The position numbers and the translations under genes were made by a program. The notes under the pieces are model-generated. The model had not been told where the DNA came from and ran no database searches. It saw only the letters and a program-made list of their open reading frames with translations. From contig NC_088860.1 of the NCBI RefSeq assembly GCF_963853765.1, positions 992,001 to 1,056,000 of the forward strand: 64,000 bases of DNA, read 5' to 3'. Positions 3,601-6,600 of the stretch are shown here, piece after piece (position 1 is the first letter of the stretch; the number at the start of each line of letters is the position of its first letter). The stretch comes from Magallana gigas. Its lineage: Eukaryota.

Positions 3601-6600
3601 TTGTTTCACTAACAATACATTACTTGACTGAAGAGTTGAATTTGTCCCTTCTGGGAACAGAAATAATCGGAATAAATTCACATGTTACAACACCTGACTT
3701 CATTAGTCTAGCAGGCAACTAGGACTCAAAAGTTCAGAGAGCAACAAACCACATCAAAACACCATCTGTTCCTAGAGAGGAATATTTGCTATAGTAAGCA
3801 AGACAGACTGCCGAGTGTCACGTTTTATTGAAATAAAATTGCTGAAAATACATCGACTTGAACTCTGGGTAAATACTTTTGCCTAATTCAGCACCTCTGG
3901 ATGTTATTCTCTTAAAACGTTGGCCAGTGAGGGAAATGTCCAAGATTTTCATTTCACTTATGAGAAATCACTCACTGGTCATGCACTTAAATCAACACCT
4001 AGCAAGACTCGATATGTAGCTTAATAATGTTTTTCCTGTCATGGGGACACTGATAGTAAATAATAAGATATAGTCTATTAGACATTTGATTCTTGCTCCA
4101 TTAAACTACCATATTTCTTTGGCAATATATGGCAAATTACTGTTAACATGTCTCATTATACAATGGCAGTGCATCAGTGATTTTTCTACAGCCAATTTAG
4201 GTCCGAATTTCGGACCTTTCCCCTTGCATGTATCATAGACCCCCCCCCCCCCCCCCCCAAATTTACCCTGTACTTTTTTCCCTCAAAGTTTTTGTTCAAT
4301 TCCCTTCATACACAAAACAGAGAATTATTTGCGAGTTTAAAGAGTAAATGAGAAGAGCACTGAACAATATTATACAATATGCAAAATATGATATTGGCCC
4401 AAATTGTCCAAACATATTAAAAAGTTAAGTTACACACTGAAAAATTACAAATGATAATTTGAGAAAAATGATTGTCGAACGACATAGGAAAGTAACATTT
4501 GACTACTGACAGATATTAAAAACAATACTATTTAGTGAGATCTACATGTATGTTCATTCGGTAAAAAATGACTCCAGGATATTTATGGATCATGTGAAGA
4601 TAAATGCCCAGACTGACATATCCCCTCAGTCAGAGAACTTACAGCGTCCCTATCTTTCACGAAGTAACAGCCACTCGTCCCTTTAGCACTCAGTTCTGGG
4701 CTCACTCCGGTCGCTATGGCCATCTCTATCTCCCATACTAGTTTCTGGAAGTCCGTGTCCCGGGGGAAGTTGTTCCCGTACAGGGTCTCATACTGAGAGC
4801 TGTCCGTGGGGCAGGCTGGTTGGTGGGGGGCGGGGTCATCTTTCTCCACGATCTGGATTTCGTCACTGTCTGTCATTCTCCCCTATGTTATATTTACACT
4901 TTCGTTAAACCGTACCTTTTAGACTGACATCTTTTAACAAGATTAAAAGGTCCTTGTACGTTCAGTCGATGGCCTGATACGTTATCAGAAGCAGAATTCA
5001 CCAGAACACTATGTACATGTAACGTAATGTCGTTTACGTTACAACATGTGTGATTTTGTCAACTACGCACATCCACGAAATGTTAGCTGGACTGCCGAAG
5101 ATGTTGTCTGATTGCGCGGGAAAACAGTGATGCTGCTCGTCTTCTACTTTCACTTTCACGATGCCACCGGGTATTTTTTTTGTTCGTTAGATGCCAGTAT
5201 TTCCTTGTCGCGTGTTCTAAGGAATTTTCAAACTTGTACACTCATTGTCACGTGCAACATAACTACATTTAAATATTTCTAAATCGATAAACACAATTTT
5301 GGTTGTAAGATACGGGGATTTCCGGTACATCCTTGACCCATTTCCTGGTGAATCCGCACAGAAGATTTACACCCCTGCAAATGTTATTGTCATTTAAATT
5401 TTAGATCACGTGTTTTAATTTGACCCTTTCAGTTTCGCAGTAAAAATCGTCCCTCGTGTTCATAGTCTATTTCATAGAATCTAGGTACTTGTAGTCAAAC
5501 ATAAAAAAATTAGAGGTTTATTGATTTTAAACTTTATCTTCATTAACTGGTGGATAAAATGTGTTCTAGAAATAAATGTGACAATACAAAAAAAATAGTT
5601 TTTTTTCTGCTGTTGCAACAATTAAAATGTCTATTAGAGATCCCCCCTAAGGGTTTATTTTCGATCCGCACCTGACCTAATAATAGCATCAATAGTGAAA
5701 CAGACTATACTATTTTATGCAGAATGTTCCTTGAAAATGGCTCGATTTACTAAGTTTTGATACAAAACAGACACCCATTATTTTTTTTAAAAACATGGTA
5801 TTGCACACAACAAGCATCAAACATGGCTATGATTTTATTAAGCAACCCAATGTTTACATTTTCAACCACTCTACACGTGGCTGAACACGAACGATAACTC
5901 TGTTCTGAATATCATCGTTTAATTTAAATAACCGCTAGATGGTGAAATAAAACCTACATCCAACACGGTTTTCATGTTTTAACATAAATCAAAGTAGGAT
6001 ATGATATGAAAAACGACTATTACTTACGTATTTTTAGAATATTATCCGAACACATATACTTCCGCTCGAAAATTCAGAGGAACTGAACAAATCTTCGTGA
6101 AGTCTCGTGAACTTTCATTCGAGCACCTCTGGATTCATTATATACTTAGCAACGATAAAGAAAACATTCCGAACACATTCGCAGGGGTGATTTATCTGAA
6201 CACAGCTTGTTTCCTTCCCTGGCGCTACTATCTCGACACGTTATTGACGTGGCTGTCAGTTTACATACAAAGGGAGGCTACTCTAATTACATGACCAAAT
6301 CTCAAGGGATAGTCTCAAAACTCAAAATAAATGTTGCAATGATTTTAACACAGATATATACAATGAATAGCCACAAAATTAACTATATAAATATGCTGAT
6401 AATTTGACAGAAAAAATGCCGAATTATTAATTATTTAATGTTGGAACAGTTACAATTTTTCTTTAATATGAACAAAAACAAACTGTTTAGGCCACAATTA
6501 AAAATATTTCAGTTTGTCCAAACCCGACCCATGATGACTGGGTGTGGGTAGGTAGGTAGGAAAATTCTTTTTTCTTCTTCAGAATTTGCATGAAGATATT

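Follow-up and report, generated by a model that had tools for sequence, protein, structure and literature searches.

The type II phosphatidylinositol 4-kinase gene PI4K2 of the oyster Magallana gigas is located on the minus strand of a 64,000-nucleotide stretch of contig NC_088860.1 (assembly GCF_963853765.1, positions 992,001 to 1,056,000). The whole stretch is referred to as the window, and positions are counted from its first letter. The gene carries two alternative first coding exons, a distal exon 1a and a proximal exon 1b. Upstream of exon 1b, a tandem hexamer repeat resembling an interferon regulatory factor element (IRF-E) or interferon-stimulated response element (ISRE) was found conserved between M. 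gigas and Ostrea edulis. It is a real phylogenetic footprint and probably a real regulatory element. Tentatively, and with confidence just short of even, we read the conserved zone around it as the alternative promoter and leader of isoform X2, which begins with exon 1b, with the hexamer repeat as a working IRF-family site. As such a site it is a plausible, previously undescribed candidate; the alternative first exon itself was already annotated. The original prediction had described a wider immune switch, in which an ISRE and an NF-kB site make the proximal isoform infection-inducible while the canonical isoform is constitutive. This two-site model is only partly supported. The features on which the argument is built are the following.

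4643-4876, minus strand: coding part of PI4K2 exon 1b, 78 codons, ATG at 4876 and GT donor (GTAAGT) at 4641-4642.
13303-13587, minus strand: coding part of PI4K2 exon 1a with the canonical QGSSGSYF loop, head to head with TCERG1.
4877-5364, minus strand: leader present in RNA contigs L033 and L034, holding both motifs.
5146-5157, minus strand (gene strand): IRF-type 12-mer GAAAGTGAAAGT, inside the conserved block 5141-5159.
5314-5323, plus strand: NF-kB consensus match GGGGATTTCC, reading GGAAATCCCC on the gene strand and fitting GGGRNWYYCC.

The enzyme belongs to Pfam family PF00454. Exon 1a codes for a second version of the protein segment coded by exon 1b, and the variant glycine loop KGTSGCYF of exon 1b replaces the QGSSGSYF of exon 1a. 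Searches with the exon 1b peptide returned exon-sized fragments only. With Dreissena isoform X2 as full-length query, a 415-residue protein (P0131) was retrieved in which exon 1b runs directly into exon 2. RNA contigs L033 and L034, from different runs, have exon 1b spliced to exon 2 without exon 1a and encode the 415-residue isoform; a junction between exon 1b and exon 1a was seen in neither of the two. In RefSeq, the exon 1b form is isoform X2 in M. gigas and X2 or X4 in C. angulata, C. virginica and O. edulis, and the exon 1a form is isoform X1 (XP_011419796). Because of these spliced contigs and RefSeq records, exon 1b is a real, expressed and already annotated alternative first coding exon, as had been claimed for an internal PI4K2 first exon with a variant loop.

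Exon 1b-type exons with the variant loop were also found in Dreissena, Argopecten, Mytilus, Tegillarca, Haliotis and Elysia. Proteins of this type from bivalves and gastropods (P0006-P0022, P0118, P0122, P0123, P0132, P0139) are often annotated as isoform X2 and share an N-terminal D-x-[IV]-x-I-[IV] motif. With such a distribution across both classes, the two-first-exon design is old within molluscs. A 2012 gene model (UniProt K1PPV5; P0243, 558 residues) fuses exons 1a and 1b and is an annotation artefact. Oyster PI4K2 protein has been recorded on haemocyte phagosomes under this entry (PMC7171069); since the entry is the fused model, the proteomic match cannot separate the isoforms.

Both predicted motifs, the ISRE (5157-5146) and the NF-kB site (5314-5323), are present in the window. 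Counted upstream from the ATG of exon 1b, the IRF-type 12-mer lies at 281 bases and the kB match at 447, and the sequence holding both is single-copy in the genome. The surrounding patch, described as CpG-richer in the original prediction, has a raised G+C content of 0.44-0.49 compared with about 0.30-0.35 in the flanks, and with a CpG observed/expected ratio of 1.0-1.4 it is not CpG-depleted. The 12-mer fits GAAANNGAAA as well as the stricter GAAA[GC][TC]GAAA[GC][TC], and is one of two strict matches in the window; the other is at about 54020.

For assessment of chance matches, motif counts and shuffled sequences were used. GAAANNGAAA occurs 16 times in the 64-kb window (7.5 expected) and GGGRNWYYCC nine times (2.9 expected). 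In shuffles of the fixed 454-base stretch, the probability was 0.038 for an ISRE, 0.007 for a kB match and 0.0006 for both. In shuffled 64-kb windows, an ISRE and a kB match no more than 450 bases apart arose somewhere in 22%, and therefore only its position gives the pair weight. The caveat attached to the prediction, that single matches are expected by chance and that co-occurrence and position carry the argument, was well placed. A second nearby GAAANNGAAA (5427-5436) was discounted as a promoter motif, as it lies within a transposon. The second exact GGGGATTTCC of the window, at 14052-14061, belongs to the coding sequence of TCERG1 (first coding exon, part of GFPRGP), and exact matches can therefore arise without a regulatory role. 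The kB-consensus matches GGGATTCTCC and GGGAATTTCC recur at equal spacing in repeated units (29686-29736, 43028-43078 and 58127-58136).

For comparison between oysters, contig L011 (exon 1b orthologue 91% identical at protein level) and ten Ostrea contigs (L001-L010) were used, the exon of the latter encoding the N-terminus of isoform X2 of Ostrea edulis without a difference. M. gigas and Ostrea were aligned over 660 bases upstream of the exon 1b ATG after removal of the transposon. Alignable blocks are confined to the range from about -640 to -236, and nearer to the ATG only 17-53% of the bases are identical. Windows of 12 bases with at least 11 identities make up only 5% of the upstream region. 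Only three blocks reach at least 17 identities in 19 bases, at -552, -461 and -283, and the last of these is the IRF-type element, whose background is about 50% identical. The conserved blocks, all on the minus strand, are listed below.

6236-6253, minus strand: conserved block GCCACGTCAATAACGTGT, position -552, at least 17/19 identities, now displaced by the transposon.
6206-6216, minus strand: promoter block AAGGAAACAAG, now displaced by the transposon.
5318-5337, minus strand: ETS-like block GTCAAGGATGTACCGGAAAT, position -461, at least 17/19 identities, assigned to ETS from the CCGGAA core only.
5247-5262, minus strand: smaller conserved block TTATGTTGCACGTGAC, with the E-box CACGTG in M. 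gigas; Ostrea TTACGTTGCATGTCAC.
5141-5159, minus strand: IRF-E/ISRE-like block TGAAAGTGAAAGTAGAAGA, position -283, three GAAAGT-type hexamers, at least 17/19 identities.
5110-5124, minus strand: smaller conserved block TTTTCCCGCGCAATC, E2F-like by consensus only; Ostrea CTCCCGCCGAATC.

The IRF-like block is identical in L011 and reads TGAAAGCGAAAGTAGAAAA in Ostrea. The Ostrea 12-mer, GAAAGCGAAAGT, retains the consensus fit: its sole difference is a T-to-C change at a position that is degenerate in GAAA[GC][TC]GAAA[GC][TC]. It is also the only GAAANNGAAA in the 2.3 kb upstream of exon 1b in Ostrea. The kB match is kept in L011, which says little because the whole L011 promoter is about 90% identical. 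At this position Ostrea reads GGATATATCA, identical at 6 of 10 bases and outside the consensus, and no kB match was found anywhere in the 2.3 kb upstream of its exon 1b. Of the match, only the first bases, within its 5' half, are conserved in Ostrea, as the 3' tail of the ETS-like block. Conservation in related species, which the original prediction had proposed as a check, separated the pair: the IRF-type element was kept in Ostrea and the kB site was lost there, and GAAANNGAAA was missing from the more distant molluscs considered below. Further oyster promoters were sought in metagenomes with a protein-pattern and a DNA-pattern scan, neither of which gave a match. An opposite-strand open reading frame of 194-211 residues upstream of exon 1b in Ostrea (L001 1702-2286 minus; also L002-L010) is probably spurious, with no Pfam matches and no counterpart in the window.

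In the reference copy, the conserved zone is split by an insertion.

5370-6189, minus strand: MITE-like (miniature inverted-repeat transposable element) DNA transposon of 820 bases, with 15-base terminal inverted repeats and a TAAAT target duplication at 5365-5369 and 6190-6194.

At least 40 full-length copies occur in the genome at 89-99% identity, the nearest at 98-99%. The element sits 46 bases upstream of the kB match and is missing from the M. gigas RNA contigs L033 and L034 and from the genomic contigs of the two other oysters (L011, L001). It is a young, polymorphic insertion, and the true upstream region therefore resumes at 6190 and beyond. The corresponding 820-base gap of the RNA contigs was also considered as an intron. 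This was rejected, as the gap has no GT-AG ends, carries inverted repeats and a target duplication, and is absent as sequence from the genomic contigs of both other oysters.

Contigs L033 and L034 are colinear with the window from the ATG to 5364 and continue with 18-20 bases from 6195-6214. Their 5' ends fall at 6212-6214, about -512 from the ATG, which gives a leader of about 510 bases. The IRF-type element is situated both within the conserved -640 to -236 zone and within this leader. The contig ends are probably assembly breaks and not the start site, because they are no more than 20 bases from the insertion site, where the assembly graph of a polymorphic sample branches. Either some of the leader coverage may come from precursor of the distal isoform, or transcription may mainly start downstream of the contig ends. 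Nineteen sequencing runs contain at least 95% of the words of 4640-5330 (691 bases); since only one of these runs is recorded as RNA and all are available as contigs, this list is uninformative on the start site. At about 4942-4956, some 70 bases before the ATG of exon 1b, L033 and L034 differ by a 15-base indel polymorphism (AGGACCTTTTAATCT). Elsewhere in the leader a few single-base differences were seen among M. gigas individuals, none of them within either motif.

The distal exon was predicted to share a compact promoter with TCERG1, and exon 1a was indeed found about 310 bases from the start of that gene on the opposite strand. TCERG1 was identified by the Pfam TCERG1 WW-domain model, which scored above cut-off, and by the presence of FF domains. 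At 16850-17320, the TCERG1 locus contains a long imperfect tandem repeat with reading frames that are His/Pro/Asn-rich or Thr/His-rich.

Several observations weigh against an IRF-driven promoter. Both motifs, predicted to lie directly upstream of the first exon, form part of the leader transcribed in L033 and L034, so that the start site may precede the IRF-type element by about 230 bases. With 9-10 upstream ATGs, the number expected at random, either the long leader is not the main translated form or the contigs include unspliced precursor of the distal isoform. Conservation of the element covers three oyster species only. Among distant molluscs, eight loci with a 1b-type exon and at least 560 bases of upstream sequence had no GAAANNGAAA and no positioned kB match within 1 kb (a ninth, with only 85 bases upstream, was left out). 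About 1.6 GAAANNGAAA were expected by chance at these loci, and there was no enrichment. The IRF element is therefore an oyster-family feature at most, or those promoters are elsewhere. The 17-mer of the element has 17 copies in the genome compared with four for the reversed control. The other 16 showed no link to immune genes; they are mutually unrelated, and several are coding and read VKVKVE. A genome-wide regulatory set of such sites was rejected on these grounds. The IRF-like sequence also fits the consensus of PRDM1/Blimp-1. Much of this would be accommodated if the zone were a real alternative promoter and leader in which neither motif is immune. X2 would then be tissue-specific or constitutive and the kB match due to chance. 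The conserved purine-rich block would be the binding site of some different factor, such as a repressor of the PRDM1 type or a further zinc-finger protein, or would have its role within the RNA leader. The loss of the kB site in Ostrea, the transcription of both motifs, their absence from the eight distant loci, the unrelated 17-mer copies and the frequency of the pair in shuffled windows all suit this explanation, as does the assembly of full-length X2 proteins from ordinary RNA runs. It leaves aside that in both species the block conforms to the 12-base IRF-E consensus, with its sole change at a degenerate position, that oyster IRFs act on such sequences, and that human PI4K2B is interferon-stimulated. 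We regard it as doubtful on balance, although a serious contender.

The full model of the original prediction, an infection-inducible promoter made of ISRE and NF-kB site directly upstream of exon 1b beside a constitutive exon 1a, draws on the spacing of the two consensus matches (no more than 170 bases), on their rarity together in shuffles of the stretch, on the retention of both in the close relative L011 and on the promoter that exon 1a has in common with TCERG1. With the kB site not conserved in Ostrea and both sites within the transcribed leader, we consider it improbable. Very improbable, in our estimate, is that the blocks form an intronic enhancer of the distal transcript that acts on the exon 1a/TCERG1 promoter, the RNA upstream of exon 1b being precursor. 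Intron 1 of isoform X1 does span the region, the ends of the RNA contigs are probably breaks in assembly next to the transposon polymorphism, the upstream ATGs are at random level, and the whole 691-base stretch is present in the 19 runs. Against an enhancer of this kind, exon 1b supplies an ATG itself, neither RNA contig connects it to exon 1a, the sole model fusing both exons is the 558-residue gene prediction K1PPV5, and no conserved acceptor site precedes the exon 1b ATG. In addition, transcription of an isoform beginning with exon 1b has to start somewhere upstream of it.

In the preferred reading, that of an isoform X2 promoter with a working IRF-family site, positions 4877-5364 together with about 6190-6330 would form the conserved alternative promoter and leader, divided in the reference copy by the young 820-base transposon. 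The tandem hexamer element would be a selectively kept regulatory element, for which the sequence points to the IRF family, e.g. CgIRF1, CgIRF2 or CgIRF8. Through this element the 1b isoform would gain a control missing from the bidirectional exon 1a/TCERG1 promoter, possibly an immune-inducible or a haemocyte-specific one. The kB match would be a feature of the Magallana lineage on the edge of the ETS-like block, and not an ancestral partner of the IRF site. The motifs, exon 1b with its splicing, the pattern of conservation and the transposon are directly observed; IRF binding and any infection response of the 1b promoter are what we infer. A stronger form, in which X2 with its KGTSGCYF loop is an IRF-driven, infection- or haemocyte-induced form of the kinase, and housekeeping and immune PI4K2 are split between the two first exons, seems unlikely.

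If that stronger form were true, molluscs would divide housekeeping and immune PI4K2 by first exons, where vertebrates do so by two genes with an interferon-stimulated PI4K2B, and the polymorphic transposon dividing the promoter would create natural expression variants. Should the IRF site be functional, isoform X2 would be added to the few oyster genes for which an IRF-responsive element is defined. Endosome and phagosome traffic dependent on phosphatidylinositol 4-phosphate (PI4P) would be linked to the oyster antiviral programme, and the locus would be a clean case of alternative promoters yielding two differently regulated enzymes with different ATP-loop sequences. If the site is inactive, the region would be an ordinary alternative promoter with two consensus matches. 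The transposon polymorphism offers a ready-made natural test via allele-specific expression. No paper linking oyster PI4K2 to ostreid herpesvirus 1 (OsHV-1), or describing induction of the gene or isoform by virus, double-stranded RNA or an interferon-like signal, was found in the literature.

Among known systems, the arrangement can be compared with human ADAR1 (p150/p110), in which one promoter is constitutive and the other, interferon-inducible and with an ISRE, gives rise to an alternative first exon and with it a different N-terminus. Like ADAR1, oyster PI4K2 is one gene with two first exons and different N-termini, one promoter being housekeeping-like and the other having an IRF/ISRE-type element. 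In ADAR1 inducibility is proven, whereas the oyster site is a candidate from sequence; the oyster exon also swaps the glycine-rich loop of the kinase.

Human PI4K2B, the paralogue of PI4K2A, belongs to the same enzyme family, is on an interferon-stimulated gene list (PMC6880163) and rises in phagocytosing monocytes, as seen with engulfed live Borrelia (PMC2679197). In vertebrates the roles are split over two genes, whereas oysters have one gene with two first exons; exon 1b is likened to PI4K2B, and the evidence does not make it orthologous. We take this literature, and that on oyster IRFs, as parallels to the 1b promoter and not as tests of it.

With the vertebrate IRF-E/PRDI (positive regulatory domain I), (GAAAGT)n, and with ISREs, the oyster element shares the fit to GAAA[GC][TC]GAAA[GC][TC], followed in register by a third, AGAA hexamer. 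It differs from them in being known from sequence, in that it may lie downstream of the start, and in belonging to an oyster, which is without canonical interferon. Oyster IRFs activate such elements in reporters: IRF2 and IRF8, both inducible with poly(I:C) and OsHV-1, act on vertebrate ISRE and IFN-beta reporters (PMC5557890). CgIRF1 has been reported to bind an ISRE and to activate the CgIFNLP promoter (PMC13524488). The ISRE of that promoter, reported to be bound by CgIRF1 and CgIRF8, is experimentally supported, whereas the PI4K2 element is a candidate from sequence. Compared by class, the two elements have in common the species, the element class and the factors (PMC13524488).

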